A stretch of 64,000 bases of DNA, taken from positions 248,001-312,000 of the forward strand of contig JAKMXF010000307.1 of assembly GCA_024704765.1 (NCBI GenBank), given 5' to 3'. Each line of letters starts with the position of its first letter. The stretch's first letter is position 1. The stretch is from Oopsacas minuta (Eukaryota; Animalia; Porifera). Below, in pieces: positions 4,235-59,601 of the stretch. The position numbers were made by a program, and so were the translations under genes. The notes beneath the pieces are model-generated. The model made no database searches and was not told where the DNA came from. It saw only the letters and a program-made list of their open reading frames with translations.

Positions 4235-6445
4235 GGTTAAAGTAAGACTCGGTTGAAATCGTTAGGACTCGATTCAGTTCTGCGGGACCTGATAACTATG
4301 CAATAGAGGGTGCATGAAATATTAGAAGGAGTGACTTTATCGAAGTTAAGGGTTCTGATATGCAATCCGTTGTATGTGCCACTTTTGGACACATTTGAAG
4401 GCGCCAGAATTCAAAATTGCTACATCCCGGGGACATTTATGTGATGGTAGGGAAAAAATAATCCCATTATATCAAGGGACCACTCAAAAGAATTGTAATA
4501 ATTTCCTGATTACCAATATTTACCAACATTTGTTTCGATACTAACTTGATGAGTTATATGAAAGTAAACACCTTCAAACTGTGAACAAAGTGGTACATAT
4601 TAATGGGTGCATCACACAACTGAACCTCGATGATGTGGTTCCCCTTCGAAAAACTACAAGCAGACACTAGTGTAGCTTCGTACAAAATTTGATGCTTTTA
4701 TACGACTTGTTACAGTTTCAGCGCTAACTTTCTTGAATATTACCATTTGGTAATTGTTAATATAGCAATATTTCATCAATAATTGTAGTAATTAATTTTG
4801 ACCTGTTCAATTCAAGACAAGTAACCATCCAAATAATCTAACCATATTTGATAGGAAATCAACGCTCATTTGATGTTGTACACCTATATTAACTCATCCC
4901 TTCGAGCTTGGCTGTGGCATTTGTACTTCTTGTCATGAAACATTTGGTCAAATACAAACTGATTAATGTACATAGTACACAGTTTGAATAATACCATTTA
5001 ACAAATGGTAATATACATGACATCTTGGAGGTGTGAGTATATTCCAATGTATAAGGTGAGGGTCTGTGTATTTTGTTCATAGTTTCTGGTTGATGATGGG
5101 AATTCTGTTGCGATTAATTGATCATGACTCATAATTGTGCTTATGTGATTTTCGAACTATTTTAATGTGGACCTGAGCATATATATCGCTTTCAGTAATT
5201 GTTGATTACTGTGTTTCATTAATATTTTTGTTAAGACCATTATTTTATAGACTGCTGCCCTCGGTTCGATTCCCACCTGCCTTTTTTCTTTTCTTGTAGA
5301 ATACCTGAAACTGACAAACTTCAAAATATCCTTGAAATTCTCCCTGATTTCAATATACACATCTCCAACATTGGCAAAGCTGTAATCTGGTAGAGTTAGG
5401 CTGTACTAGAGCGGAGCTTTGTATATTTTCTCTGACTACAAAGTAGATATTCGTCATAGATAATATATTTCAACATTCAACATCTGGCATCTGCATTAAG
5501 TGTATATACAGATACTATTATGTGTGAACGACTTTGAGTGATCATAAATCTCGCAAAGCTAATCCTAGTCCCCAGAACACAAACGATACATGGACCGGAG
5601 GGGAGAGAAATCGCTAGCGTTATGAACTAGAGGCAGAAATTGCAGGTGTGTTATCGACGCTAGTTTTTGTGGTTCTGAGAAATAGATTTCTAGCGATTCA
5701 GAAAACAAAAGAAATTTGGTTTACAGACGGTACACATGAAACGAAAGTTTTCACGATATTTCGCTAAATAAGCCCCTGGGCTATAGAAGGCTCAAAGAGG
5801 CCAATTGTTGTGGTTAAAATGAATCATCACCCTCTATAAAATCATTTTTCAATGAAATATGAGCATAATTTGAGTATGCAACAAATTAAGATTAGAATTT
5901 CCGATAAATCTTTGTATTCTCAACATAATAATAGACAAATAAACGAATAATGGACAAGAAAATTAAGCACCTGGGCGTATTAGAAACACGACATAAGTTA
6001 TACCGAGTACCAGGAAACAAAAAGGATGAGATAAATTTAGAACTATGGCCTTTCTACTATAGGTGATATTTTGGTGACTATCCTTAGGGGGAGACGAATA
6101 TCATTAGAAAGGTCCCTATATCCCTAGAGTTTTCAGAATGGAGGGTCCTAAATACTTGTCTCCAAACGAGCTTTCATCGTGGGGAAATTCTTTCTTATAT
6201 AACATGCGTTAGCCCAGGGGCGTAGATCCCGGGGGGTGGGGGATGCTCTATGTAATCATCCCCCTACATTTTAACTTTTGAGATACGTCTACAGGGTGTA
6301 ACGTTATTATTGCTCTCAAATCTTTTGAGTTTCAGCAGATTATCCTCTTGTTACATTCAAATTTCACTGTTCTCGAGTATGTTTTCAAAGATATTAATCT
6401 GAGATTTCATTCCCCATCTACTCATTGAAATATATGTTATAAAAT

Positions 6446-6819: not shown

Positions 6820-8248
6820 GTTATAATCCAGTTAGATGTATACTTGTAACAATCTCTATCGTGCTTATTAATAATTCGCACTCGTAGAGTCTCTTCGAAA
6901 ATAATTTATACTGTAATCTAGATATATTAATCAATAGGTTCTTTTCACACTACCAAGTATAAAGTATATTATATAGACTATGATCTATGTTCTTAGCTTG
7001 TTTTATTATTGTCTATCTTTTTGTCGAGTTAGGAAGTCTAATGATTACGATTATGGCATATTCATATTTGTCATATGTAGAAAAGGGAATACCGACAATT
7101 CGCACCACGACAATTCGCGCCTGATTTGATTGGTCAATTGATTCCGAATATGATTTTTAGCATTGTATGATCAATTTTGTTGTTATTTATGTACATAAAG
7201 TAAAGAAATTTCAAAAAGTTCGTATATTTTAACGGCTACAGAGATAATCGAGTGTTCGAATAGCATATCGTGAATATTCGCCTTAGAGAGTGACTTTCAA
7301 AGCATACATAGGATACTTAGTAATACACAACACAAATTATCGGTTGATTAGGAGTAACCTAGGCGCCCGAAAGGTGCCTAATGAGGACGCTTCGTGTCCA
7401 CAACCGCGTACCGCAAGGAAGAGTAGCTTGTATATGTTGAATTTTTGAACCATACAAGTAGTAAAGTATGGATTGCACAATCTGTGATCAAAGAATTTAT
7501 CCATACATTTGGAAAAAATATAAATAAAATCATTCCTGATTTATCATAATACAATTTGAAGCTGTTCTTCTATGGAAAATCTTTCTTATATTTCCCTACA
7601 TTGAGCTGGCCTAACTCAAAATTGCTACTTAAATTCCTTTAATAATACGGTGGACTCCGCTTAATAGAGCCACCGGTTAATCTGGCAAACCCCTTTATCC
7701 AATAAATTTAGGTGATAATTCAATCTCTGGATGGGTATTGTTTCGGATAAGTAAACTAGCCATCCACTTTTAAATATTGGCCTTGCTGGGATAGATCGGA
7801 ATGATATTTGTAACAGATATTTTGTTTATTTAACTTATAATCATGATATCACGTACGTCATGATTAAATGAACTTAATACCCCTACACAATTATCCTACA
7901 AAATGGGGACACAAGGATACTGCCAATAGGATATCCAATTCAGGCATTAAGTGTTACGTAAAGTTTGAATCACCGCGTTCGTGCCAGGAAATTAACCCTT
8001 TAGGTTTTTATTCGATAACAAGTCAGATGAATCAAGTCAAGTCATAAATAAACTATATTTAATGTCTAATATGCATGTGTGTACAAACTAATTGAATAAA
8101 AATAATGATAAATATAATAAAAATAAGAAAATAAATAATTATGATAACTTAAAATAATATATATAAAGAGAGTTGTAGGAGAAAGATCAAGTGAGGTGCA
8201 GCCACCACATCATAACCACTGTCCTTCTTCCATAGTAGCTGCACCTCA

Positions 8249-9565
8249 ATGGAGAGGATAGAGGAGAGGAGAGGAGAGGAGAGGAGAGGAGAGGAGAGGA
8301 GTGGAGTGAGAAGAGAAAGAGATGTGACGCATTGGTTGTGTGAGCAAAGAGGGGTGTGCAAAGCAAGAGTTCATACCAAAGGGATGGTGATAGTCAAGCG
8401 CACGAATGAGCACTCCCATGGGCCTGACGAGCAGGCAGCGGACTGTTGTGAAGCGAAGGCAGGCATGAAGAGGAAAGCACGGGAGTCCCAGGATAGCACA
8501 CACCACATAGTGGGCGAGAGTTTGCTAACAGCATCAGAGGGTACTGCTGCTAAACTCCCCAAACTGGACAGCCTGAAGCGGACGATACAACGCCAACGTG
8601 CTAGTGTACTTGCAGCTCCAGCACAGCCTACCACTCTAGCAGAGCTAGCTCTACCAGCAGTCTACCAGCAGACAGCCAAGAGAGAACAGTTCTTACTCTA
8701 CTACTCTGGTGCAGACGATGTACACAGATTCCTCATCTTCGGGACACAACACAACCTCGGGATGCTACGGCGAAGCAAGATCTGGCTAGCTGATGGCACC
8801 TTCAAGACGGCGCCTCCCCTCTTCGCCCAGCTGTATGTGGTGCATGGACTTCGTGGAGGAGATGATCCTATGAAGACCGGCCATCTGTTACCGAGCCTGT
8901 TCGTGCTACTGCCCAACAAGACGGAGGCTGCCTACCTGAGGATGTGGGAACAGATCCGCCTACTGTGTCCACTTGCCCAGCCTCAACAGATGCTCCTGGA
9001 CTTTGAGAAGGGCGCGATTACCAGCTTTGAGCATGTCTGGCCTAACACAGTAGTGAAGTGCTGCCTCTTCCACCTCACACAGAATATCTGGCGACATGTG
9101 CAGTCTGTAGGGATGCAGTCTGCCTACACACATGACGAAGAGTTGGCTATGCGCATCCGGAGGATACCAGCCCTTGCTTTTGCTCGACCAGCAGACGTAC
9201 CCGTTCTGTTTGATCAAGTGGCAATGGACCTCCCCCTTACGCCTGGAATAGGCGAACTAGTCGACTACTTTGAGAGGACGTATATCGGCCGCACAGTTGC
9301 CAGCGGATACCATGTAGCGGCGACGTACCCTATTCACCTGTGGAACAACCACATCGGCACGCCCTTAGGACTCCCCCGTACAACCAACGCCGTAGAGGCA
9401 TGGCACCGCAGCTTCAATGCCACTGTCGGCTGCCATCACCCTACCATATGGAAGTTCATCCTCTCACTCAAGCGTGAGCAGAGCCTAGTGGAGGTGCGGC
9501 ATACTAACTACCTCGTTGGCAAGCCACCATGCACCAACCAAGCGGAGGCGGTCCCAACAGAGTGA
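8249..9565 (+). CDS. MULE transposase, left arm of copy 1 (microsatellite-derived N-terminus, frameshifted C-terminus)
   Basis: 438-aa ORF with a partial FLYWCH (WLCEQRGVCKARVHT...HSH) and MULE DDE motifs WLADGTFKTAP, LLDFEKG, CCLFHLTQ and TTNAVEAWH. A 7-bp insertion gives the ending PCTNQAEAVPTE. Confidence 0.75.
   Translation: MERIEERRGEERRGEERSGVRRERDVTHWLCEQRGVCKARVHTKGMVIVKRTNEHSHGPDEQAADCCEAKAGMKRKARESQDSTHHIVGESLLTASEGTAAKLPKLDSLKRTIQRQRASVLAAPAQPTTLAELALPAVYQQTAKREQFLLYYSGADDVHRFLIFGTQHNLGMLRRSKIWLADGTFKTAPPLFAQLYVVHGLRGGDDPMKTGHLLPSLFVLLPNKTEAAYLRMWEQIRLLCPLAQPQQMLLDFEKGAITSFEHVWPNTVVKCCLFHLTQNIWRHVQSVGMQSAYTHDEELAMRIRRIPALAFARPADVPVLFDQVAMDLPLTPGIGELVDYFERTYIGRTVASGYHVAATYPIHLWNNHIGTPLGLPRTTNAVEAWHRSFNATVGCHHPTIWKFILSLKREQSLVEVRHTNYLVGKPPCTNQAEAVPTE
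8261..8300 (+). repeat. (GAGGA)8 microsatellite at the outer boundary of the left arm
   Basis: Read directly. The equivalent tract in copy 2 (~54859-54878) has 4 units. Confidence 0.9.
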
Positions 9566-11082
9566 GGAAGCGTTGAAGACTCTAGTTCGCGAATATTATT
9601 CTCCAGATCGTTCTAAAATGGAGTTCTTGCAGGGTGTAGCACATCATTTCAGCCTGGGAGCCGATTAACATGTAAATCAAAGTATTATCTAGCCCTCAAT
9701 ACATTGATTAGAGATAATCCTTTAGATTAACATGTTAATCGGCTCCCAGGCTGAAATGATGCGCTACACCCTGCAAGAACTCCATTTTAGAACGATCTGG
9801 AGAATAATATTCGCGAACTAGAGTCTTCAACGCTTCCTCACTCTGTTGGGACCGCCTCCGCTTGGTTGGTGCATGGTGGCTTGCCAACGAGGTAGTTAGT
9901 ATGCCGCACCTCCACTAGGCTCTGCTCACGCTTGAGTGAGAGGATGAACTTCCATATGGTAGGGTGATGGCAGCCGACAGTGGCATTGAAGCTGCGGTGC
10001 CATGCCTCTACGGCGTTGGTTGTACGGGGGAGTCCTAAGGGCGTGCCGATGTGGTTGTTCCACAGGTGAATAGGGTACGTCGCCGCTACATGGTATCCGC
10101 TGGCAACTGTGCGGCCGATATACGTCCTCTCAAAGTAGTCGACTAGTTCGCCTATTTCAGGCGTAAGGGGGAGGTCCATTGCCACTTGATCAAACAGAAC
10201 GGGTACGTCTGCTGGTCGAGCAAAAGCAAGGGCTGGTATCCTCCGGATGCGCATAGCCAACTCTTCGTCATGTGTGTAGGCAGACTGCATCCCTACAGAC
10301 TGCACATGTCGCCAGATATTCTGTGTGAGGTGGAAGAGGCAGCACTTCACTACTGTGTTAGGCCAGACATGCTCAAAGCTGGTAATCGCGCCCTTCTCAA
10401 AGTCCAGGAGCATCTGTTGAGGCTGGGCAAGTGGACACAGTAGGCGGATCTGTTCCCACATCCTCAGGTAGGCAGCCTCCGTCTTGTTGGGCAGTAGCAC
10501 GAACAGGCTCGGTAACAGATGGCCGGTCTTCATAGGATCATCTCCTCCACGAAGTCCATGCACCACATACAGCTGGGCGAAGAGGGGAGGCGCCGTCTTG
10601 AAGGTGCCATCAGCTAGCCAGATCTTGCTTCGCGTAGCATCCCGAGGTTGTGTTGTGTCCCGAAGATGAGGAATCTGTGTACATCGTCTGCACCAGAGTA
10701 GTAGAGTAAGAACTGTCCTCCCTTGGCTGTCTCCTGGTAGACTGCTGGTAGAGCTAGCTCTGCTAGAGTGGTAGGCTGTGCTGGAGCTGTAAGTACACTA
10801 GCACGTTGACGTTGTATCGTCCGCTTCAGGCTGTCCAGTTTGGGGAGTTTAGCAGCAGTACCCTCTGATGCTGTTAGCAAACTCTCGCCCACTATGTGGT
10901 GTGTGCTATCCTGGACTCCCGTGCTTTCCTCTTCATGCCTGCCTTCGCTTCACAACAGTCCGCTGCCTGCTCGTCAGGCCCATGGGAGTGCTCATTCGTG
11001 CGCTTGACTATCACCATCCCTTTGGTATGAACTCTTGCTTTGCACACCCCTCTTTGCTCACACAACCAATGCGTCACATCTC
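8319..11082. repeat. Long inverted repeat (arms ~1.37 kb, 21-nt loop at 9691-9711)
   Basis: 8319-9690 is the near-exact reverse complement of 9712-11082, and the ORF track gives the same protein on both strands. Confidence 0.95.
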
Positions 11083-11188
11083 CAACTCTCCTCTGCACTC
11101 CAAATAAATATCCATCCTCCAACAGCTTGTCTCCTCCTCTTTGTGACTTGATCAGCCTAAAGGTTGGCTGATCAAGAGGTTCCGTCAT
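9838..11188 (-). pseudogene. MULE transposase, right arm of copy 1, native ATG but frameshifted
   Basis: Starts MTEPLDQPTFRLIKSQRGGDKL at 11188. Frameshifts near 10913 and 10630, plus the same 7-bp C-terminal insertion. Confidence 0.88.
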
Positions 11189-13092
11189 TGTGAAGTTATA
11201 ATTTCAAAGATATATTGTGATGATTGTAATGATAGAACGAATCTGAGTTAGAACTAGATCATTTTCTATTTATGTCCGAGGATTGCAAATATCACAGGTG
11301 ATCACACCCTGTTTGCTACATTCCTCTTTACCAAATATAGGCCTAAGAGTATTTACTTCGTGTGTGTTTACTTAATACTTACTATAACAATCTTTGGAAT
11401 TCACATCATTAAATGGATTCATGGAATCATGTCATCTAAAATTAGAATTATCTATCCAATTAAGACTTTCCGTGTGTAGATATAATTATTAGAAAATTGA
11501 TTATTAACGTGTACTTAGATTAAATTAATTAACTAATATCATACTAAATTAGGTGCAAATTGTCGGTGGTGCGAATTGTCGGTATCCGGTAGAAAAGTGC
11601 TAATTTTAAATTCTCCATCCCCCCAGAAAAATCACCGATCTACGCCCCTACGTTAGCCTGATGACGTGGCTTACCTGGTTGCGGAATGATGCAAAGATTT
11701 GTAGCAATCATTGGGGTCGTGCCCCATTTGCACAGATAGCAGTGTTTTCCAACCCCTTTTAACGGCCTACCCCTAGCTAATATAGTTCTTTTCTTAAAAA
11801 TAATATAGATGTGTTCAAAAAAATGGTGTACATATATATACGTATAAGAAACTTTTGCATAGGTAGTACTTACGAAATTGCATTAACTATCGAAATTTGG
11901 GAATGGCTATTGTGCAACCCTGAGATAACTTCCAAATTTGATAGTTTTGATTATGGTTTTCCATCCATTTTTATTAATTTGTCAACTTTTGGTTCTTCTC
12001 GTGGATTTTGGGCTCAATTCGTGCACTACATTTCGTGACAATTCAATTCGTTTTACATGTAATTAGTATTCAAATTTCTGACAGTAGTTTAGAAAGGACA
12101 GCACTGTGCGGCCCTACAAGGGCGTATCTAGTAGTTAATCAAGGTGGATATAGGTAGTGAGCGCCCAAATTCGATTAAATACCAACTACGCCCTTAAAGC
12201 GTCGCACAGGAACAGAGATGTTCTTTCCAAACTCCGTAACGAATTCATTGTATTGCATTTATCTCACAGGTCATGAGTATTACCTACAACATATACAAGT
12301 TATATTGATAATGAATCAACAGAAATATGAATTCGTTAACAAATAAGTAAGTGTAAACAATAAGGTCTTAACAAGTTAAAATATTTAGGGGAGAAATTGA
12401 AGTTAGCACTCTTCAACAGCGATTGGTCGAGAAGATAGTTCTTGAAGATGAACTCTCATTAGCTACCAATAAATTGCACATATTATTTGCCAGTTTCTCA
12501 AATTATATGGAATAAAAACACCTTCCGAGCTCGAAATAATAATAGCTCTAAAGAAATATACAGAAGATTCATACGTGTCTGCTAAAGTGGAACTGCAACA
12601 AAAGATAAACGGTAAGATTTTAAATTATATCGTAATTATGAATGTATTGAATACATATATCATAGCAGTTTAACCGAATACGGACGGGAAAATGCGTGAT
12701 TTAATGGCGTCTGCAAGGTGCAAAAATCTCGTATTTGGTGCAGGAATTGGTCAAATAAATGTGGTAAAACTCGTGTTCAGGTAATTACGAACTTAAAATT
12801 TGGCCTAAATCGTTCAGGGCAGGGGTTCCCAACCTAGGGTAAGCCAGGACTATTCCAGGGTGACGCAAGAAGGTTGAATCATTTAAGAAAATTTCTTAAA
12901 ATTTGTAATTTTGATACCATGTATTTGGAAATGATCTAAAATAATATTTTGACAGAAGAATTGCAATAGCAATATTATATTGCCTAGAAAATGAACCTAG
13001 GGGCAATGATTTAATTACTTTTCCATTACACATAATTAAGTATGAATGTCTGTCAAGCAATAGGCCTGCGAAAATGTAAATGAAATTATATA

Positions 13093-14648: not shown

Positions 14649-17250
14649 CACTGATATACAAAATTGTAAAGGTTTTTGATGATTAAACAAAAATAGCTGA
14701 AATTGAATCATTTGAAGGGACTGTTTATGAATGAGTTAAGTATGTATTCACAACAGGTCTATAATTTGTAATTTTCTGGTTGGAAGATTGCACCAATATA
14801 CGATTAAATATATGAAATTATACATACATTCAGGTTTATTACCTACTAAATCACACTAATATTAACTATCACTAGCGCGCTAGCTTACTTGCGCTAGCGT
14901 TCTAACACTTCGTGTCCGTACTCGGCCTTCGGCCCTCGCTTTGACTGTTAGTTTGTGTGATATTCAGAATCAGCGTACCCGATTACCCCACAATAACCGT
15001 TGAAACCACATTTCCAGGATTTTGAAATTTGTTTACCTTTTGTTTCCTATATATCCATATAAACAAGTTAAATTGATATATGACAAATCCATAAGTGTGA
15101 TTCGGATCAGCATATTCGCTAACCTTTAGTCAAGTTTCATGAAATTTGTATATTTTTCTGATTAACACCATAGATATATAGATACAAACATTTTTGCAAA
15201 TACGAATTCCACATTCCATTTCAGCTTCCTTAGCAACGGACAAACGGACAGACAACAATTGAGATTTAATAATATAGATTCATATTTAATCGTCAAAAAA
15301 TTGTTTTTTCCTCGGCTTTCTTTTGTGTAGAACATCAGGCTTGTTGTGTTTCAAACACCAACAGTGGTCCGCCATCATACTGGAATTCCATTTTCTTTGG
15401 TATCTGTGTTCAATCTCACTAATATCCTGATGAAAACGTTCGCCTTGTTCTTCGCTTAGTGCCCCAAGATTTTTTGGAAAATAATTCAGGTGTGAGTGAA
15501 GGAAATGGATTTTTATAGACATTCTCGCACCGAGCATTTTGTAATTCTCTATTAATCTCTCGACAATGTCAGCATAGTTGTCAACTTTGTGATTTCCAAG
15601 GAAACTTTCCACCACATCACGAAAGCTCAGCCAAGCTTTCCTCTCTAGGCTATTTAATTTTTTAAGAAATTCATCATCTCTGAATAGCTCCCTTATTTGT
15701 GGTCCAACAAAGATGTCACCTTTAATCTTCACATCAGAAATTGCAGGGAATTTTTTCCACGAGGTACAAAAAACTTCCACAATCCTTGAGCAATGCCTTC
15801 ACAAAATTTTCCATTAAACCAAGTTTAATGTGAAGAAGTGGTGACAAGACATCGTTAGAATCCACAAGTGGTTCTTGAATAACATTGTGACTACCAGAAA
15901 CTAAATGGTCTCGATGCGACCACACTTTCTGGACGTAATGTCGAGCGTCTGCACGGCTATCCCACAAAGACAGAAAACATGGATATTTGGTGTAACCACC
16001 TTGTTGTCCAAGAAGTAATGATATGACCTTAAGATCTCCACAAATTAACCATCGATGCATGGTGTAATTTAGTGCATCTAGGAAGACTTTCATGCTGTCG
16101 TAAGTCTCCTTAATTTGAAAAGAATGTGCAACTGGAATACACGCAAGCTTGTTACCATCATGGAGTAACACTACCTCTAAACTTCTTTTAGAGGAATCAA
16201 TAAATAATCGCCATTCTTCAGAATCATATTTCACTCCAAGCTTTTCTACCAGACCAGGAATATTTCCACAATATACAAATGATGACTGTACGTGAAAATA
16301 TTTAAGGAAATCTTGTTCTCTAGTTCAATATTTTGAAATATTCGCCCCCGGAAGTAGTAAATTCTTCTCTTTTAGACGTGAAGCAAGAATTTCTGAAGAC
16401 GATTTTGGTAAATTGAGATCTCTTATTAGGTCATCAAGATCATCTTGATCAAAAAGCTGAGGAGAATTATCATCTGATGGGAGTATGTACTCATCAGAAT
16501 CTCTACTACTATCATTGTCACTGCTAATGTCCAATATTTCCAATGGAACTGGTACAGGTAGGTCCTCTGAATGTGGAACTGGCCTAATGGCGGACGGTAC
16601 GTCTGGGTACGCAATACTGGATTTATTCTTTTTTGTGATACGATCAATTTTCGTCATGCAGAAATAACAATCCGAAAGATGACACATTGGTTCTCTCCAT
16701 ATCATTGGAACCGCAAACGGCAATTTCTTTCTCCTCCCAGCATACCACAAGCGTAAGTTCTCAACACATGTCTTACAGGCATTGTGTGGAGCCCACGGCT
16801 TATCTTGATCCCCAAGATGGCATCCAAAATATGCGAAACAACAGCGTTCTACAGCCTTTGTGATATTTTTCCGTTGGTCAGTTGTAGTATACCTCCCACG
16901 GATATAACAAAACTTTTCAGAGAATTTTTACAAACCCGAGAAGCCACAAACAATAAAATGAACAAGATAAACTAACTGTCGAGTGGAATAAAACAGATTA
17001 TAACTACTATTAGAGGAAATTTACATTACATAAGCAATTCAAACCAAATAAATGCGATAAGGGTGATGTGTAGAAAGGAATTTAGAAATATTTTGACCAC
17101 GTAGTCAATAAAGACCAACATAGCTAAAATAGAGATTTCTTACTTTTAGTACCCTTGAGAATGAAAAAATACATAATAATTCCCAATATATATCTACACT
17201 TTGTAAAAATAATAGAGAAAGAAGATCATCAAAAATGTTGTATATCAGTG
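14649..17250 (-). mobile_element. Chapaev3-like (CMC) DNA transposon, copy A
   Basis: TIRs CACTGATATACAA, flanks TAA and TTA (3-bp TWA-type target, one mismatch). It splits the Buster codons QC/LKVLS. Confidence 0.8.
15286..16947 (-). pseudogene. Chapaev3-like transposase, several frameshifts
   Basis: Motifs GDQDKPWAPHNACKTC, PFAVPMIWREP..HLSDCYFC, WRLFIDSSKRSL, CFLSLWDSRA, LHIKLGLM and SEEQGERFHQDI. The family name is from recall of the motif set and the CAC...GTG ends. Confidence 0.75.
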
Positions 17251-50037: not shown

Positions 50038-52012
50038 ACATAGAGTGTATATGCTTCTTGTTTTTGGTAGCTCATTTACAATAATCTCTAAGGCTCGAAC
50101 ACATTCATAGAATTTTTGAAAAGTTGACAAATTGGATGGAATCTTATCACAATAAGGACAAAAGTAAAATAAAATCAATCAATCAAGTAGCCAATCAAAT
50201 ATTTCTATCGAATTTGGAAATGAATTCCATAGAATACAAATAAATTGTCATTACATTTTTGGAGAAAAGTATCCTGAGGACATCAGGGATAAATTCTACT
50301 CTTAATTCAGTTCAACAAAGATTCACATCGTCTGGCATTAATCAATATATTCGTGAATACATAGGAATTTCATAATGATAGATAAATTGAAAATTTATGA
50401 CTAGTCATAATTATTCGCATTCTTTCGTTTTAGTTGTTGATTCGCAACGTCCTCATTATATTAAGAATAGTTCGACTGTTCTTAAGGCAGATGTCAGATA
50501 TTAAAGTTGCTATTAATGAAAGTCTCGAATTCATCTAAGTAACTTTATCGAATTCGTCATAAAAAATTGTGTGAGTTCAATTATGCTTGGAGAATTAGGG
50601 CCTTGAATGGTTACCATGTTGCAGAGATCCGATGGATTCCTATAAAGCACAAAGTGCTTAGCTTTCTTGCCCTGTGGGCTCACGAACACTCCGGATCCTC
50701 TTGTATTCTTGTTGTTAAAAGTTCAATAGAAAATAGGAGGACAACTTGACAAGCATAAATTTATTTCCTCTTCAACTGTTTGCAGTCTTTCAATTTTTAT
50801 ATTCAGAATATTTTTGAGTGCGAAGAAGCCGAGTTCACAAAATAATTAGTCCAAAAATGCTGTAGATTTTAAGAGCCTAAGTTATTATCAGAGGGCAATG
50901 TGTTTTAACATATATTTAGAATATATCAAGGTCTATTTCTTTATACATTAATTTCAAGATGTGATCATTCCTAATATCATCCAACTCTTCTTCCTCCTCG
51001 ATATCTAATAGAAGATCGTTTAATCCACCCCGAATAATGGATTTCTCACCCAGTCATAATCTTCATTAGGCAAATTTGGAATGCAACGCTGAATTTTATC
51101 TTGTAATGTGTTAAGGTATTCAGTGATATGCGAAATAATCCATATGCATTGCTCAAAGCGGGATGAAGAAAAATATCTAAATTCACTTTTGTAACTCGGA
51201 TTTTATAGAAGTATTTTTTCATTCAGATACTACATCTTATGTGTAGAAATGCGGATAGAAGTGGAAATACAACATATCTGTAGCATTAGCTAACTTTGCA
51301 CACCAAGTTGTATCAGCAAATAAATTCACAAAACTTCTTTGATATCTTCAATAGTGAAAAACTTAACCAGATATTTTTTCAGTTCATAGATGCGAGACAA
51401 TCTTTTACTCTCGATAGTAATTTGACCTCTCTGCGGCTTGACATGTTGATATCCCATTTCTTCACAAAGCGTAGTAAATTAAGTAAGATTTCGGCGGCAT
51501 TTGATCAAATTCACGTTTTACAAAGTCGTCAAGTGCAGCTTTTGTTGAAATCCCATCATCTAATGCTTCGCGGTGAAAAAGTAGTGTATGGTTACGATCT
51601 CCTTGTTTGCTGTTTTGTCAAAGTTACAAATCTCTTCATTGACCCAAACATTGTTGGAGCAATCTGTACAATGGAATACCGACAATTCGCACCTAATTTG
51701 ATTGGTCAATTAATTCCGAATATGATTTTTAGCATTGTATGATCAATTTTTGTTGTTATTTATGTATATAAAGTAAAGAAATTTCCAAAAGTTCGTATAC
51801 TTCTAATGGCTACAGAGGTAATTGAGTGTTCGAATAGCATATCGTGAATATTCGACTTAGAGAGTGACTTTCAAAGCATACATAAGATACTTAGTAATAC
51901 ATAACACAAATTATCAGTTGATTAGGAGTAACCTAGGCGCCCGAAAGGTGCCTATTGAGGACGCTTCGTGTCCGCAACCGCGTACCGCAAGGAAGAGTAG
52001 CTTACTTGTATA

Positions 52013-54026
52013 CTGTATTTCCCTGAATAAGCGCCCCGGCGCTTATTTTTTCGTGCACATGAAACTCCAGGCCCTTATTTTGAGGAAGATGATAGAAATT
52101 AGTTTTCCCTAATTAAATAGGTAGTATCTAAAAATACATTGATGAAGTTAGTACTATATAAAAGCTACGTAACTATGCAGTGCATTTATAAGGATCATCC
52201 TGGACCTCCTCACACAAATTTTCGTCATCTAGGATAACAATTTGATTTAGTTCATCTTGTTCAAAGTCTAGTTCGTGCGGGTTTTCAGACTTGTCATCCA
52301 TACCGTTGTTTATGGTCAGTTCTTCTAATTTCTGAACTAGCTCATCACGCTTGTTGAAAAGTATCCTATTCTCTTTAATAACTGTGATCTTATCATTTTC
52401 GGAATTGTCAATACTATTTGAAATTGCGCACGACTTGAAAGATTCTGTAATGATTTCTGTGGATAAGGGTTCCCAGGCTTTTTTGACCCACGAGGCTACT
52501 AAAAGTTTAGTAGGAGCTTTCATGTTACCACCACGTGTGTACTCTTTCTCACCTTCACTCATCCACTGCTCATACTGCTCACGATAAGCAGCTTTAAAGG
52601 ACTTATTCCAGGACACATCAGGCGCTTGGATCAGACCGGTGCATCCTCCAGGAATAACTGCATGTCAGTTTTCAGCCTTGCAACCTCTTTTTTGACACTA
52701 TCTTGGATATGACATCTAAAACTGTTCCAAACAAGTAGTCTCCGCCCGAATGATAATCCTCCCCATACAGTTTGTAACCATTCATGGGTCAACTTTTCAT
52801 CCATCCATCCATTACTACTCATAACACAAACAACACCACTGAGTTCATTAAGATCACGATCACGTCTTTTACCTTTGAAAACAATAAATGGGGGTAGTTT
52901 AATGCCATTTGCTTTAGCAGCGAGACACACAGTAATGCGGGACTTTTCGTGGCCGGTTGTCCTAATTGGGATAGATTTCTGTCCCACGAAATCGACAGTT
53001 GTATCGACAGGCATGTCAAACCATATTGGAGTCTCATCCATGGCTCCGATATGGGAAAGCTGGTATCGATTACGTAGAATTTGCGAGCGTACGAAGATGA
53101 TGTAATTCATCAACTTTGGAATGACTGTTTCAGGAATCTTTTGTCCAACTGTAGTACGACGCCTGAGAGTAATATTGTGTCTACCAAAAAAGTTCCGTAG
53201 CCAACCGCGACTTGCTACGAAGGATTCTTCTTCTCCAGCATAGAGTTCTAGAGCCTTTCCCTGTACCATTTTACGTGTAACTCTCAGCCTCTGGCTTCTC
53301 AGTTCCTCAATCCATGAATACAAACTTTCCTCCAACGTCTCGAATGAAGGCGGCCGACCACCGCCATCTAGCCTACGACGCTTTGCATTATGAGCAGCTT
53401 CACAACTATCTTTTAGCTTGTCTTTATTTTTGCACCATTCTCGGATACGCTTGCAGTCGACACCATACTTTCGAGCTGCTTCTTCCTTTGAATTTCCAGA
53501 AGTTACAAAACAAACAGCTTCTAATTTAAATTCAAGTGTGTAGCTATGAAACTTTCGTTTTATTTGTCCTTTTTCCATATTTACTATTGCTAATATGAAA
53601 GGGAAGACAATATTATGTAGCTAATAATGGCTAGTACCGGTACACAAATTACTATTTGTACAATTTGAAAAATCTAACATATAAACTCAACACAATACAA
53701 TTTGTAATCCAACATCTATTAATCGAGCTTTATACTAATCAGAATGTTTTTCACATCACGTAATCAGTTCACACTAACACGTTTATTACGCCTACTTTCA
53801 GTTTTTTAATCGATAGAATCATAATGTAAACATTATTCATTCATTCAAACTTGTGATATACCATATACATATACCTTTACTGATCAATGAATTTCAATCC
53901 CTAGCGTTTATTTAAACGGGCACTTATAATAGACCGGCGCTTATTCTTTTCGTTCATATGAAACCCTCGGCGCTTATTCAAACCGACGCTTATTCAAACT
54001 CCCGGCGCTTATTCGGGGAAATACGG
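52013..54026 (-). mobile_element. pogo-superfamily transposon (DD35D, Passer/POGK-like)
   Basis: TIRs C(T/C)GTATTTCCC(T/C)GAATAAGCGCC with TA duplication. The empty site is visible in MULE copy 1 near 7430-7436. Confidence 0.93.
52173..53578 (-). pseudogene. pogo transposase (Brk-type DBD, CENP-B HTH, DDE_1) with a 1-nt frameshift near 52660 and second D changed to N
   Basis: Motifs SYTLEFKLEAV, FVASRGWLRNF, GAMDETPIWFD, LLVWNSFRCH and (AVIPGGCTGLIQ)APDVSWNK, with 35 residues between N and the last D. Confidence 0.88.
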
Positions 54027-54905
54027 TATGTTGAATTTTTGAACTATACAAGTAGTAAAGTATAGATTGCACAATCTGTGATCAAAGAATTATCCATACA
54101 TTTGGGAAAATATAAATAAAATCATTCCGGATTTATTATAATACAATTTGAAGCTGTTCTTCTATGGAAAATCTTTCTTATATTTCCCCACATTGAGCTG
54201 GGCTAACTCAAAATTGCTACTTAAATTCCTTTAATAATACGGTAGACTCCGCTTAATAGAGCCACCGGTTAATCTGGCCAACACCTTTATCCAGTAAATA
54301 TAGGTGATAATTTAATAACTGGATGGGTACTGTTTCGGTTAAGTAAACTAGCCATCCACTTTTAAATATTGGCCTTGCTGAGATAGAACGGAATGATATC
54401 TGTAACAGATATTTTGTTCATTTAACTTATAATCATGATATCACTTAGGTCATGATTAAATGAACTTCATACCCCTACACAATTATCCTACAAAATGGGG
54501 ACATGAGAATACTTGCCAGTAGGATATCCAATTCAAGCATTAAGTGTTACGTAAAGTTTGAACCACCCCGTTCGTGCCAGGAAATTAACCCTTTAGGTTT
54601 CTATTCGATAACAAGTCAGATGAATCAAGTCAAGTCATAAATAAACTATATTTAATGTCTAATATGCATGTGTCAACAAACTAATTGAATAAAAATAATG
54701 ATAAATATAATAAAAATAAGAGAATAAACAATTATGATAAATTAAAATACATATATATAAGAGAATAGTGTTGTAGGAGAAAGATCAAGAGAGGTGCAGC
54801 TACCGCATCATAACCATTGTTCTTCTTCCATGGTAGCTGCACCTCAATGGAGAGGATAGAGGAGAGGAGAGGAGAGGAGTGGAGTGAGAAGAGGAGATAT
54901 GGCGG

Positions 54906-56235
54906 ATTGGTTGTGTGAGCAAAGAGGGGTCTGCAAAGCTAGAGTTCATACCAAAGGGATGGTGGTAGTCAAGCGCACGAATGAGCACTCCCATGGGCCT
55001 GACGAGCAGGCAGCAGACTGTTATGAAGCGAAGGCAGGCATGAAGAGAAAAGCACGGAGTCCCAGGATAGCACACACCACATAGTGGGCGAGAGTTTGCA
55101 AACAGCATCAGAGGGTACTGCTGCTAAACTCCCCAAACTGGACAGCCTGAAGCGGACGATACAACGCCAATGTGCTAGTGTACTTGCAGCTCCAGCACAG
55201 CCTACCACTCTAGCAGAGCTAGCTCTACCAGCAGCCTACCAGCAGACAGCCAAGGGAGAACAGTTCTTACTCTACGACTCTGGTGCAGACGATGTACACA
55301 GATTCCTCATCTTTGCGACACAACACAACCTCGGGATGCTGCAGCGAAGCAAGATCTGGCTTGCTGATGGCACCTTCAAGACGGCACCTCCCCTCTTCGC
55401 CCAAGTGTATGTGGTGCATGGACTCCGTGGAGGAGATGATCCTATGAAGACCGGTCATCTGTTACCGAGCCTGTTCGTGCTACTGCCCAACAAGACGGAG
55501 GCTGCCTACCTGAGGATGTGGGAACAGATCCGCCTACTGTGTTCACTTGCCCAGCCTCAACAGATGCTCCTGGACTTTGAGAAGGGCGCGATTACCAGCT
55601 TTGAGCATGTCTGGCCTAACACAGTAGTGAAGTGCTGCTTCTTCCACCTCACACAGAATATCTGGCGCCATGTGCAGTCTGTAGGGCTGCAGTCTGCCTA
55701 CACACATGACGAAGAGTTGGCTATGCGCATCCGGAGGATACCAGCCCTTGCTTTTGCCCGACCAGCAGACGTACCCGATCTGTTTGATCAAGTGGCAATG
55801 GACCTCCCCCTTACGCCTGAGATAGGCGAACTAGTCGACTACTTTGAGAGGACGTATATCGGCCGCACAGTTACCAGCGGATACCATGTAGCGGCGACGT
55901 ACCCTATTCACCTGTGGAACAACCACATCAGCACGCCCTTAGGACTCCCCCGTACAACCAACGCCGTAGAGGCATGGCACCGCAGCTTCAATGCCACTGT
56001 CGGCTGCCATCACCCTACCATATGGAAGTTCATCCTCTCCCTCAAGCGTGAGCAGGGCCTAGTGGAGGTGCGGCATACTAACTACCTCGTTGGCAAGCCA
56101 CTAACCAAGCGGAGGTGGTCCCAACAGAGTGAGGAAGCGTTGAAGACTCTAGTTCGTGAATATTATTCTCCAGATCGTTCTAAAATGGAGTTCTTGCAGG
56201 GTGTAGCACATCATTTCAGTCTGGGAGCCGATTAA
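54906..56235 (+). pseudogene. MULE transposase, left arm of copy 2: no native start, frameshift near 55060, but intact C-terminus
   Basis: ORF 55084-56235 ends GKPLTKRRWSQQSEEALKTLVREYYSPDRSKMEFLQGVAHHFSLGAD and lacks the 7-bp insertion. Confidence 0.85.
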
Positions 56236-57639
56236 CATGTTAATCTAAAGGATTATCTCTAATCAATGTATTGAGGGCTAGATAATACTTCGATTAACAT
56301 ATTAATCGGCTCCCGGACTGAAATGATGTGCTACACCCTGCAAGAACTCCATTTTAGAACGATCTGGAGAATAATATTCACGAACTAGAGTCTTCAACGC
56401 TTCCTCACTCTGTTGGGACCACCTCCGCTTGGTTGGTGCATGGTGGCTTGCCAACGAGGTAGTTAGTATGCCGCACCTCCACTAGGCCCTGCTCACGCTT
56501 GAGGGAGAGGATGAACTTCCATATGGTAGGGTGATGGTAGCCGACAGTGGCATTGAAGCTGCGGTGCCATGCCTCTACGGCGTTGGTTGTACGGGGGAGT
56601 CCTAAGGGCGTGCTGATGTGGTTGTTCCACAGGTGAATAGGGTACGTCGCCGCTACATGGTATCCGCTGGTAACTGTGCGGCCGATATACGTCCTCTCAA
56701 AGTAGTCGACTAGTTCGCCTATCTCAGGCGTAAGGGGGAGGTCCATTGCCACTTGATCAAACAGATCGGGTACGTCTGCTGGTCGGGCAAAAGCAAGGGC
56801 TGGTATCCTCCGGATGCGCATAGCCAACTCTTCGTCATGTGTGTAGGCAGACTGCAGCCCTACAGACTGCACATGGCGCCAGATATTCTGTGTGAGGTGG
56901 AAGAAGCAGCACTTCACTACTGTGTTAGGCCAGACATGCTCAAAGCTGGTAATCGCGCCCTTCTCAAAGTCCAGGAGCATCTGTTGAGGCTGGGCAAGTG
57001 AACACAGTAGGCGGATCTGTTCCCACATCCTCAGGTAGGCAGCCTCCGTCTTGTTGGGCAGTAGCACGAACAGGCTCGGTAACAGATGACCGGTCTTCAT
57101 AGGATCATCTCCTCCACGGAGTCCATGCACCACATACACTTGGGCGAAGAGGGGAGGTGCCGTCTTGAAGGTGCCATCAGCAAGCCAGATCTTGCTTCGC
57201 TGCAGCATCCCGAGGTTGTGTTGTGTCGCAAAGATGAGGAATCTGTGTACATCGTCTGCACCAGAGTCGTAGAGTAAGAACTGTTCTCCCTTGGCTGTCT
57301 GCTGGTAGGCTGCTGGTAGAGCTAGCTCTGCTAGAGTGGTAGGCTGTGCTGGAGCTGCAAGTATACTAGCACATTGGCGTTGTATCGTCCGCTTCAGGCT
57401 GTCCAGTTTGGGGAGTTTAGCAGCAGTACCCTCTGATGCTGTTTGCAAACTCTCGCCCACTATGTGGTGTGTGCTATCCTGGGACTCCCGTGCTTTCCTC
57501 TTCATGCCTGCCTTCGCTTCATAACAGTCTGCTGCCTGCTCGTCAGGCCCATGGGAGTGCTCATTCGTGCGCTTGACTACCACCATCCCTTTGGTATGAA
57601 CTCTAGCTTTGCAGACCCCTCTTTGCTCACACAACCAAT
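54906..57639. repeat. Long inverted repeat (arms ~1.35 kb, 21-nt loop at 56259-56279)
   Basis: 54906-56258 is the near-exact reverse complement of 56280-57639. Confidence 0.95.
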
Positions 57640-57757
57640 GCGTCACATCTCCAACTCTCCCCTGCACTCCAAATAAAAATCCACTCTCCGACAGCTTATC
57701 TCCTCCTCTTTGTGACTTGATCAGCCTAAAGGTCGGCTGATCAAGCGGTTCCGCCAT
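56405..57757 (-). CDS. FLYWCH-MULE transposase, right arm of copy 2, 450 aa, catalytic core intact, last 44 aa replaced by 12
   Basis: ATG at 57757. Motifs WLCEQRGVCKARVHT..HSH, LADGTFK, LLDFEKG, CFFH and TNAVEAWH. The 7-bp insertion near 56440 shifts the end to PCTNQAEVVPTE. Confidence 0.85.
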   Translation of the reverse strand: MAEPLDQPTFRLIKSQRGGDKLSESGFLFGVQGRVGDVTHWLCEQRGVCKARVHTKGMVVVKRTNEHSHGPDEQAADCYEAKAGMKRKARESQDSTHHIVGESLQTASEGTAAKLPKLDSLKRTIQRQCASILAAPAQPTTLAELALPAAYQQTAKGEQFLLYDSGADDVHRFLIFATQHNLGMLQRSKIWLADGTFKTAPPLFAQVYVVHGLRGGDDPMKTGHLLPSLFVLLPNKTEAAYLRMWEQIRLLCSLAQPQQMLLDFEKGAITSFEHVWPNTVVKCCFFHLTQNIWRHVQSVGLQSAYTHDEELAMRIRRIPALAFARPADVPDLFDQVAMDLPLTPEIGELVDYFERTYIGRTVTSGYHVAATYPIHLWNNHISTPLGLPRTTNAVEAWHRSFNATVGYHHPTIWKFILSLKREQGLVEVRHTNYLVGKPPCTNQAEVVPTE

Positions 57758-59601
57758 TAAGGATTGTTAAATTTCAAAGACACAATGCATAAGTAATAAT
57801 GAGAAAACGAATCTGAGTTAGAACTAGATCATTTTCTATTTATGTCCGAGGATTGCAAATACCACAGGTGATCACATCCTGTTTACTACATTCCTCTTTA
57901 CCAAGTATAGCCCTAAGAGTATTTACTTCGTGCGTGTTTACTTAATACTTACTATAGCAATCTTTGTAATTCATATCATTAAATGGATTCATGGAATCAT
58001 GTCATCTAAAATTAGAATTATCTATCCAATTAAGACTTTCCGTGTGTAGATATAATTATTAGAAAATTGATTATTAACATGTACTTGGATTAAATTAATT
58101 AACTAATATCATATCAAATTGACCAATCAAATTAGGTGCGAATTGTCGTGGTGCGAATTGTCGGTATCCGCTGTACAATTATTAACGCAGCATTCCCACT
58201 TCAAGCCTCAGAATACCGATACTGACAAAATGTTTGAAATATATCTTGATATGTTGTAGAGTTCTTTACCATATAGAAATTGATCTAGATTTGGTCATCA
58301 CCAATATAACGAATGAAAGTTAGCAGTTGAACTTTTCCTCCAATATCTATTGATACCTAAACTTGGAGGGGCTACATATTATTAAACATTACAAACAGTT
58401 TTTACGATGTCAACAGACATGTCATGAATGCGTCTGCTAATGGTACAATGGGAGAGATGAAGATTCATAATTCTTATTCAGCACCCCATCAATCATTGTT
58501 TATAGGATAATCTTGAAAGCAGGAGGTAGCAATTGTGTGGGATTTCATCTGGATTGCTAAAGGTTCTGCTATTAAATAGCCTGCTTCTTGAACTTTATTA
58601 GAATTGTTACATTTTAAAACAGTCGAAATCTATTGTTGGTGGTGAAATAAGAGTCACTTGAAGAATTCCAAAGGTTTATCCATGAGCTGACGAGGTTTTG
58701 AAAGAAAACATCTCTTTAGATTGATTGGAACCATAGCTTTATTTGAAGGTTTATCACCAAAAACCAGGCATTCTTGAATTGGGTAGTTACCAGACGAAGT
58801 GAATCCTATCGAGATATAACTATCAGAATACAATCAAAGTTTGTTTACTTTTGTAAGTGCTATTAAACAATTGACTGAGGCACCATTAGAGTAGTACTTT
58901 TCAACAACCAATTCAGGATCGAGAATCATTTCTTCATTCTGATTATGGAATAGGAAATGTCTTTTTCCAAAGACATCTCCACTAACAATATTCTAGGAAT
59001 GTTATTATATCTAGTTAAAAGATAAAAGTAGTAGTAAAATTGAGAATATTGTACAATATAATACTCCAGAGGAACGTCAGAGGACAATAAAATGCACATT
59101 GGTATGGTATCAATACGAGATAAAGCAATAAGTAATTGTTGTAAGGCCTGCGGCACCCGTAGAGGAGGCCAAAGGTACAACTGGTTAAGATCCACTGGTC
59201 TAAGGTAACACCAATATAACAACAATGTACTAAATACACTCATATTATTTTAACTCTGTTGTATATAGAGAGTTGCCATACATTTCAGATTACTGCTGCA
59301 TTACCATCTCAGCAACATAAGAAGTTTTAACCAATTCCACCTCCTTCTAAAATGTGGAAATATATAGGAATGGACGTCGTATGTGAATTGTTTGAGAGTG
59401 AATACGGTTATAAATATATATTAGCGACTTTGTTATCTGGGCAAGTATGTTGTCGTACACCCTCTTAAGTCTAAGACATGAGAAGAAGTCAATCAAAATC
59501 TGCAAGATATCTACCTGGATATGGGATAAATCGATACCACCAATCATGGCCAAAGCAAGGAGTTCACAAGTAAAGTGACTAAAGTGTATTTTACTGGTTA
59601 C

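Follow-up and report, generated by a model that had tools for sequence, protein, structure and literature searches.

Two insertions with an internal transposase palindrome

The window, the whole 64,000-nt stretch of Oopsacas minuta DNA analysed here, contains two insertions of one transposable element. Copy 1 (W1) spans 7086-11588 and is flanked by a perfect 9-bp target-site duplication (TSD), GTAGAAAAG; copy 2 (W2) spans 51673-58170 and is flanked by a different perfect 9-bp TSD, CTGTACAAT. The termini GGAATACCGACAATTCGCACC ... GGTGCGAATTGTCGGTATCCG are common to both copies, and the 18-mer ATACCGACAATTCGCACC occurs 6 times against 0.05 expected. At the core of the element, the transposase gene is duplicated in inverted orientation over 2.75 kb, with the arms arranged tail to tail around a 21-nt loop. 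One arm (N) is the full gene with its own ATG, while the other (T) is a 5'-truncated copy. Between the arms and the element ends lie 1.2 kb (left) and 0.4 kb (right) of unique sequence. The features of both copies are as follows.

Copy 1
7077-7085 (no strand): left TSD GTAGAAAAG; present as a single TSD in the empty-site allele from reads
7086-7121 (+): left end, terminus GGAATACCGAC and two 15-nt subrepeats (CGACAATTCGCNCC)
7122-8186 (+): left region, non-coding; 93.5-94.8% identity to copy 2
8187-8253 (+): hairpin module just 5' of the T arm, stem GGTGCAGCYACC / GGTAGCTGCACC, loop of ~26-28 nt
8254-8307 (+): (GGAGA)n purine tract, outer junction
8308-9681 (+): T arm, 5'-truncated transposase gene with a 7-nt frameshift insertion near 9528
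9691-9711 (no strand): 21-nt loop AGCCCTCAATACATTGATTAG, 'flip' orientation
9722-11188 (-): N arm, native ATG at 11188, split into three reading frames
11189-11551 (-): right region, 5' of the native ATG
11552-11588 (-): right end, two 15-nt subrepeats and terminus ...GTCGGTATCCG
11589-11597 (no strand): right TSD GTAGAAAAG

Copy 2
51664-51672 (no strand): left TSD CTGTACAAT
51673-51711 (+): left end
52013-54026 (-): nested pogo/Tigger-like element in the left region, not part of the MULE
54793-54843 (+): hairpin module, conserved
54886-56248 (+): T arm, truncated gene with canonical C-terminus, without the 7-nt insertion
56259-56279 (no strand): 21-nt loop, reverse complement of that in copy 1 ('flop')
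56289-57757 (-): N arm, native ATG at 57757; the 7-nt insertion frameshifts the C-terminus
58117-58170 (-): right end
58171-58179 (no strand): right TSD CTGTACAAT

The palindrome arms of copy 1 (8308-9681 and 9722-11093) are 98.3% identical over 2.8 kb, with 912 nt identical; those of copy 2 lie at 54886-56248 and 56289-57659. The T arm of copy 1 lacks ~32 codons and retains half of the FLYWCH domain, while the N arm of copy 2 carries a 450-aa open reading frame (ORF; 56405-57757) that starts at the native ATG and encodes FLYWCH and MULE domains. The (GGAGA)n tract is an expansion of the native coding stretch AGAGGAGAG, and its number of repeats varies among copies. The right region of copy 1 presumably supplies the promoter and 5' untranslated region. 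The extra 2 kb of copy 2 corresponds to the nested pogo/Tigger-like element, which has 26-nt inverted ends, a TA duplication and a broken HTH_Tc5/DDE_1 gene. An earlier note on this DNA had described two insertions of a MULE with the same termini, different perfect 9-bp TSDs and the same layout; we reproduced the coordinates and TSDs, together with the purine tract, the 5' truncation of the + arm, the 21-nt loop and the native ATG on the - arm in both copies.

The element is a Phantom/Tm1-like FLYWCH-MULE

The element is a Phantom/Tm1-like FLYWCH-MULE, a cut-and-paste DNA transposon of the Mutator superfamily. Its transposase, ~480 aa when complete, contains a FLYWCH zinc finger at its N terminus and a MULE domain (PF10551), the latter scoring above the curated cut-off on both arms (E-values of 1.3e-9 to 1.9e-9). 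An intact 480-aa ORF is present in locus L001, which belongs to a different TIR subfamily. Perfect 9-bp TSDs flank W1, W2, L003 and the single-gene relative L002, and TSDs of 8-11 bp, typically 9, define the Mutator superfamily. These domains and TSDs bear out the assignment to the MULEs made in the earlier note. The translations show the motifs ADGTF, LLDFE, CCxFH and NAVEAWH, which may correspond to the catalytic DDE triad and C/DxxH residues. Among named proteins, the relatives are arthropod and tunicate FLYWCH-MULE proteins with 35-38% identity. Because both window copies are defective through frameshifts, they would have to be mobilised in trans by intact relatives.

The ends are composite, with 15-nt tandem units numbering 1-2 in the window copies, ~9 in L001 and 7 in L008; those of L002 are 196 nt long. 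The 'short TIRs' of the earlier note stand as common termini of the two window copies, but in relatives the ends are not simple short TIRs; they are arrays of 15-nt repeats of the Foldback/Tm1 type. The element is not a Foldback in the classical sense of long terminal inverted repeats making up most of the sequence, as its 1.37-kb arms are internal.

Tm1 of root-knot nematodes is a Mutator/Foldback element of the Phantom subclass (PMC3169594). Like the sponge element, it encodes a transposase of ~480-500 aa in which a FLYWCH domain at the N terminus is combined with a MULE domain, and it makes 9-bp TSDs. Its ends likewise consist of a variable number of 13-15-bp tandem repeats, the outermost nucleotides being slightly asymmetric, and deletion or MITE-like derivatives are numerous (PMC3169594). 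In contrast, Tm1-A has one transposase gene, and an internal inverted duplication, a hairpin module and arm conversion are undescribed there (PMC3169594).

The palindrome moves as part of the element

We compared 2 kb of flanking sequence on each side of the two copies and found no similarity. Contigs assembled from reads of the same sample, which are shorter than one arm and do not phase the loop, run from the left flank of copy 1 through a single TSD straight into the right flank. The presence of its empty site in the reads makes copy 1 an insertion polymorphism. Further same-sample contigs join the left end of the element to differing flanks. A segmental duplication, which the earlier note had named as a possible, though unlikely, source of the two copies, is excluded because the flanks are unrelated on either side, the TSDs differ and an empty-site allele exists. 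Together, the 9-bp TSDs and the polymorphic insertion demonstrate that the palindrome is transmitted whole by transposition.

Structural comparison points to a single origin

The palindromic layout was found in 8 of the 9 Oopsacas loci examined, which represent at least four subfamilies with 83-97% identity, and none of the nine is a full-length single-gene copy. The outer junction, the purine tract, the upstream hairpin and a homologous loop are common to W1, W2, L001, L004, L005, L010 and L011. The outer junction is also kept in L003, whose sole difference, the absence of the hairpin module, is a secondary deletion. Two sequences from other assemblies, L009 and L012 (~70% identity), carry the T-arm module and match the Oopsacas copies in outer junction, purine tract and upstream hairpin; both arms are visible in L009, while the HiFi contig of L012 stops just past the T arm. 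The ENA assemblies involved, ERZ25766962, ERZ25071281, ERZ25072730 and ERZ25072740, appear to derive from organisms other than O. minuta, because their proteins reach at most 71% identity to this high-copy family.

The hairpin (12-bp stem, ~50 nt) is kept 5' of the T arm where the rest of the left region cannot be aligned, as between copy 1 (7122-8186) and the L001-type subfamily. Its fold stability corresponds to z = -1.8, a value too modest to decide for a stable RNA fold, and its stem sequence is invariant, with one compensatory and one disruptive change in L005. It is a putative cis element. Searching the element and the hairpin against known RNA families returned only sub-threshold miRNA-like matches at the palindrome centre, which merely mirror the hairpin shape of that centre.

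The common outer junction and upstream hairpin, the latter absent from L003, show that the palindrome has a single origin, predating the split of at least four Oopsacas subfamilies and of the lineage in other hosts. The proposal in the earlier note that the palindrome arose once and was mobilised afterwards thus gains support from the junction, hairpin and loop in six more Oopsacas loci and two other assemblies. In the phylogenetic tree, the single-gene relatives L007 and L008 fall between palindromic lineages with moderate support, a position that requires either losses of the T arm or a misplaced branch.

Arms of one element resemble each other more than those of other elements

Arms within one element are 97.0-99.7% alike, compared with 96-97, 93, 86-88 and 70% between elements. 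In the tree, each arm groups with its partner from the same element without exception; this pairing has 100% support in 7 of 9 elements. Between W1 and W2, 45 differences are fixed on both arms and none is arm-specific. The 7-nt frameshift insertion is found on both arms of W1 and on the N arm of W2, and is absent from the T arm of W2 and from L003. Near the loop, two types of C-terminal sequence occur in the combinations a|b (L001 and L005), b|b (window copies) and a|a (L004). The spread of the insertion and of the C-terminal types among arms is as arm-to-arm conversion predicts; with both W1 arms frameshifted, damage spreads by the same route. Loop orientation varies within a single subfamily, being reverse-complemented between W1 and W2.

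These patterns indicate that gene conversion between the arms makes them evolve together, and that crossing-over between them inverts the centre (flip/flop). Both conclusions carry an assembly caveat: the Oopsacas genome was assembled with SPAdes from a combination of PacBio and Illumina reads and then polished with Pilon (PMC10280926), a procedure that may have collapsed or homogenised the arms and so inflated their identity, and the orientation of the centre needs spanning long reads.

Possible roles of the palindrome

The palindrome may be a source of self-directed hairpin RNA, encode a truncated inhibitor protein or be a neutral passenger. As the two genes meet at a very short loop, transcripts reading through from the promoter of the N gene would be expected to form a hairpin RNA with a ~1.37-kb stem against the family's own transposase. 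Such an RNA could act as a built-in, mobile self-limiter, by analogy with Mu killer. Self-silencing sits paradoxically with the high copy number of the family and its persistence across hosts.

It is also possible, if somewhat unlikely, that the palindrome has no effect on the element, having arisen in a master copy through a single accident of repair or alternative transposition, and that it persists only because the transposase needs just the ends and conversion keeps the arms alike. Consistent with this, both arms are defective in most copies, conversion propagates damage as well as intact sequence, and deletion derivatives without parts of the arms or the hairpin have still multiplied, the L003-type joint (8035>8405) occurring at ~5 times unique depth alongside further joints. 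However, long palindromes with short spacers are generally prone to deletion and usually unstable in eukaryotic genomes, whereas this layout has been kept to ~30% nucleotide divergence and in other hosts. The conservation of ~50 nt beside the T arm within an otherwise unalignable left region, and the lack of full-length single-gene copies among the nine loci, likewise speak against a passenger.

Alternatively, the T arm may function as a second gene, with expression driven by the left region and the hairpin module. Its product, in which the FLYWCH DNA-binding domain is incomplete, would then serve as an inhibitor or partner, much as the Tn5 inhibitor or the KP proteins of the P element do. In W1, L001 and L009 the T-arm reading frame stays open for 436-449 codons, an ATG just past the W1 hairpin reads in frame through the purine tract, the hairpin 5' of the T arm is conserved and the depositors' annotation places genes on both arms. 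Nevertheless, conversion from an intact N arm would by itself leave a T arm open, and in L001, L005 and L012 the post-hairpin ATG is either missing or followed by stops. We therefore regard a second gene as unlikely.

A bolder and distinctly doubtful reading is that the palindrome is a selected feature that regulates the element and acts as a recombinational switch. An arm-to-arm crossover would invert the centre and swap the arm that holds the intact C-terminal coding end, so that the promoter-bearing gene would toggle between full-length and truncated transposase; hairpin RNA from the convergent arms would also keep copy number in check, and the second arm would be available as a template for conversion. 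The canonical C-terminal end lies on the T arm in W2 and L009 and on the N arm in L001, and the loop of L001 is oriented opposite to that of W2. If true, this would be a transposon architecture that regulates itself, which has not been described before.

Recurrent formation at each locus, for example by template switching in gap repair after excision, would make arm identity a sign of youth. The arms are near-identical in every copy, and aberrant transposition does give DNA transposons inverted duplications (Ac/Ds, bioRxiv 10.1101/2020.01.07.897926). However, all subfamilies and the other assemblies have in common the junction and the adjoining, non-duplicated hairpin module, the loop is homologous, and the a|b mosaic and shared 7-nt insertion need exchange between pre-existing arms, making recurrence very improbable. 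An assembly artefact, through fold-back PacBio reads with a missed adapter or an error in traversing the de Bruijn graph, might be suspected from the mix of PacBio continuous long reads and Illumina reads in SPAdes (PMC10280926) and from the one HiFi contig that ends right after the T arm (L012). This is scarcely credible, as the palindrome recurs at eight Oopsacas loci whose sequence is specific to the subfamily, whose arms are imperfect and contain indels, and whose conserved loop is not an adapter. Short-read contigs contain the loop and the outer junction, and the palindrome is present in an independent long-read assembly of another organism (L009).

Overall, we consider it likely that this is a mobile Phantom/Tm1-like MULE with a once-formed, inherited palindrome, arm conversion and a predicted hairpin RNA.

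Comparison with other inverted duplications

Maize MuDR carries two convergent genes between its ends, each beginning near one end, and mudrA and mudrB are unrelated. The sponge element also has convergent genes, but one of them is a truncated copy of the other, and together they form a palindrome. In primate Y-chromosome palindromes and plastid inverted repeats, intramolecular gene conversion keeps the arms near-identical, and inversion isomers of the spacer or single-copy region occur. Those structures are chromosomal or organellar and span tens of kb to Mb, while the sponge palindrome is the cargo of a mobile element.

Double-Ds is a comparable inverted transposon duplication. Inverted duplications of Ac formed by alternative transposition trigger siRNA silencing (bioRxiv 10.1101/2020.01.07.897926), and this is a plausible origin route for the palindrome. 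Ac/Ds duplications are, however, sporadic locus-level rearrangements in the hAT superfamily, whereas the sponge palindrome is the inherited architecture of a whole family.

A further parallel is Mu killer (Muk) of maize, reportedly described by Slotkin et al. in 2005. Muk is an inverted duplication of mudrA and a proposed source of hairpin RNA (PMC3440606). Muk and the sponge palindrome are both natural inverted duplications of Mutator transposase sequence, and the predicted product of Muk is a long hairpin RNA against the transposase. In contrast, Muk is a single rearranged plant MuDR locus in which TIRA is included and whose transcription comes from a flanking gene, and it is not known to transpose or be conserved, while the sponge duplication is tail to tail, internal with both ends flanking it, multicopy, mobile and old, and silencing is only predicted.

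Significance

The literature that we searched, with many subscription papers, Repbase and Dfam outside its coverage, contained no description of an internal palindrome in a MULE, in keeping with the statement in the earlier note that no animal MULE of this architecture was known to it. Inverted transposase duplications are known as accidents that kill a transposon family, as with Mu killer; here, one is the standard inherited form. The family that carries it is active, belongs to an early-branching animal whose genome is compact, and has kept the palindrome through the divergence of subfamilies and hosts, with conversion homogenising it. In practical terms, gene predictors mistake both arms for host genes, and such sites may cause breaks or collapses in assemblies. 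The family offers a natural system for studying how palindromes are tolerated and maintained, whether transposons can limit their copy number through an RNAi trigger or inhibitor that they carry themselves, and whether arm-to-arm conversion may serve as a repair or switching device on a mobile element.

Two palindromic insertions in the window

Two MULE insertions, W1 and W2, occupy the positions proposed in the earlier note, each lying between perfect 9-bp target-site duplications (TSDs) that, as claimed there, differ between the copies.

Features of the two copies in the window
7086-11588: W1, with TSD GTAGAAAAG on both sides
8302-11102: W1 palindrome
9691-9711: W1 central loop
51673-58170: W2, with TSD CTGTACAAT on both sides
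52013-54026, gene on minus strand: nested pogo/Tigger-like DNA transposon in the left region of W2
54893-57652: W2 palindrome
56259-56279: W2 central loop

Both copies have the short common ends described previously (GGAATACCGACAATTCGCACC and GGTGCGAATTGTCGGTATCCG), with one or two 15-nt subrepeats and an 18-mer core with six occurrences in the window (expected, 0.05). The remaining layout was also confirmed: the centre is an asymmetric 21-nt loop, a GGAGA-type tract, (GGAGA)n, is joined to the 5′ end of the truncated transposase gene on the plus strand (T arm), and the tail-to-tail gene on the minus strand (N arm) extends to its native ATG in both copies. W2 is ~2 kb longer than W1 because of the nested element, which has a TA duplication, 26-nt inverted ends (CTGTATTTCCC...) and a disrupted gene encoding CENP-B_N, HTH_Tc5 and DDE_1 domains. 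Segmental duplication of W1 and W2 was checked through the flanks and rejected, with no similarity across 2 kb on either side.

Upstream of the T arm lies a conserved 12-bp-stem sequence (hairpin module). Directly 3′ of it in W1, an ATG opens a 438-aa ORF (8249-9565) that runs in frame through (GGAGA)n (MERIEERRGEERRGEE...) into the truncated transposase; the corresponding ATG in W2 is out of frame owing to the repeat number of the tract.

Family identity

The element is a member of a known superfamily and subclass. Its protein carries a FLYWCH finger and a MULE domain, and a related 2.0-kb single-gene element from another assembly (L002) represents the plain form of the family, with one 482-aa gene, 196-nt ends made of 15-nt repeats (termini GGGATACCGAC) and a 9-bp TSD. 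The combination of FLYWCH and MULE domains, 15-nt-repeat ends and 9-bp TSD is the one known from Tm1, a Phantom-type Mutator/Foldback element of root-knot nematodes (PMC3169594).

Mobility and copy number

The whole unit moves by cut-and-paste. Transposition as a unit, claimed in the earlier note, is borne out by the differing TSDs, the unrelated 2-kb flanks and an empty site of W1 in same-sample read contigs, where the left flank and a single GTAGAAAAG lead straight to the right flank (7085 / 11598). This empty-site allele, which differs from the window by two substitutions and a homopolymer difference, makes the W1 insertion polymorphic. Other read contigs join the left end of the element to different flanks, and therefore further copies exist. 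Compared with unique flank contigs, read-contig depth summed over the arms is higher by two orders of magnitude, which indicates high copy number only roughly.

Read contigs also contain internal-deletion derivatives with joints 7612>10259, 8035>8405 with CA filler, and 10445>right end. The second, at ~5× the depth of unique sequence, is the structure of L003, a further Oopsacas locus. The right end of L003 (11098-11118) stops 16 nt before the usual outer end, with a perfect 9-bp TSD (CTTTTCCAA) directly after it; the cut that released this element may have been at the inner 15-nt repeat.

Both arms of W1 are frameshifted, and in W2 there is an ORF of 450 aa whose C-terminus is frameshifted. 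With both copies defective, mobilization must be in trans; the N arm of the Oopsacas locus L001 has an intact 480-aa ORF.

A single origin of the palindrome

Further loci, nine from Oopsacas and six from ENA assemblies, were retrieved through contigs encoding homologues. Counting the window copies, eight of the nine Oopsacas loci examined are palindromic (W1, W2, L001, L003, L004, L005, L010 and L011), and the ninth, L006, is a single-arm fragment. The palindromic loci form at least four subfamilies, namely W1/W2/L003 (96-97% alike), L004 (93% to the window copies), L001/L005 (86-88%), and L010 and L011 (83-85%), which differ in their 15-nt end repeats and left regions. In all eight, the truncated arm starts at the identical point of the coding sequence, preceded by a shared purine tract, and the loops are homologous. 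The hairpin module before it (stem GGTGCAGCTACC / GGTAGCTGCACC, ~26 nt between) is kept in all except L003, where a secondary deletion, with a joint that is multicopy in reads, removed it.

L009 (ERZ25766962) and L012 (ERZ25071281) have the same hairpin module, junction and truncated arm. The arms of L009 are 98.2% alike, separated by a 1.78-kb spacer and ~70% identical to the Oopsacas arms; the L012 contig stops before any second arm. The homologous loops of the Oopsacas subfamilies, and the junction, purine tract and hairpin module that these have in common with L009 and L012, show that the palindrome had one origin and was then passed on by transposition, in line with the single origin and later mobilization proposed earlier.

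The L012 copy has an end repeat and the hairpin module, and its long-read contig ends 270 nt past the T arm (8145-8416), which may reflect a break in assembly at a palindrome. Other repeats lie near these relatives. Downstream of the MULE in L001, a second, unrelated palindrome (14821-16179; ~1.37 kb, 87% identity) overlaps ankyrin-repeat genes. A 369-nt repeat is scattered around the MULE of L009 (1053-1421, 2795-3163, 5207-5575 and 13669-14037; 91-92% identity); a palindromic relative occupies 4536-5575.

Concerted arms and loop orientation

In a maximum-likelihood tree, seven of nine elements have both arms grouped as sisters at 100% support, the pairing of the L001 and L005 arms not being settled. 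Comparison of W1 with W2 gives 45 differences that the two arms of a copy share; no difference marks one arm across copies. A 7-nt insertion causing the C-terminal frameshift is present on both arms of W1, only the N arm of W2 and neither arm of L003. For the final ~100 nt of the arms next to the loop there are two diverged types, arranged (T|N) as a|b in L001 and L005, b|b in W1 and W2, and a|a in L004. All four patterns are as predicted by arm-to-arm gene conversion in both directions. At the sequence level the arms evolve in concert, with the caveat that their identity may be inflated by assembly.

The loop and adjoining asymmetries are reverse-complemented between W1 and W2 as assembled, with one orientation (flip) in W1, L001 and L005 and the other (flop) in W2, L003 and L004. 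Such inversion is what crossing-over between arms would produce.

The Oopsacas assembly is a Pilon-polished SPAdes hybrid of PacBio and Illumina reads (PMC10280926). Because a de Bruijn graph merges both arms of a palindrome and ambiguous short-read polishing can homogenize them, the exact arm identity (in W1, 98.3% over 2.8 kb, with 912 nt identical) may be inflated. Only spanning long reads can set the orientation of a centre flanked by ~1 kb of identical arms. Our main conclusions do not rest on arm identity and loop phasing alone: the arms keep indels and substitutions, the a/b mosaic and common junctions are independent of loop phasing, and the assembly behind L009 is a separate one built from long reads.

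Novelty and possible function

The animal MULE overview by Dupeyron et al. has neither a sponge host nor an internal palindrome among its entries (PMC6446971). Our literature search found no description of a heritable internal MULE palindrome with a conserved adjoining module, arm conversion and inversion isomers; as far as such searches reach, this combination is undescribed, in agreement with the earlier note on animal MULEs.

Several functions can be considered. One possibility is an inhibitor, a transposase with an incomplete FLYWCH domain that the T arm would encode. T arms open for >430 codons in W1, L001 and L009, and the conserved module upstream, would suit this reading. Alternatively, the palindrome may be a neutral passenger. 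More speculatively, inversion could toggle the C-terminus of the promoter-bearing gene, which would fit the placement of the intact C-terminal end: W2 and L009 have it on the T arm, and L001, with its loop opposite to that of W2, has it on the N arm. Ranked first among the functional readings is a possible built-in self-limiter acting via hairpin RNA: transcription from the N-gene side passing the 21-nt loop would fold into a ~1.37 kb duplex against the family's own transposase. An analogous hairpin RNA has been proposed for maize Mu killer (PMC3440606).
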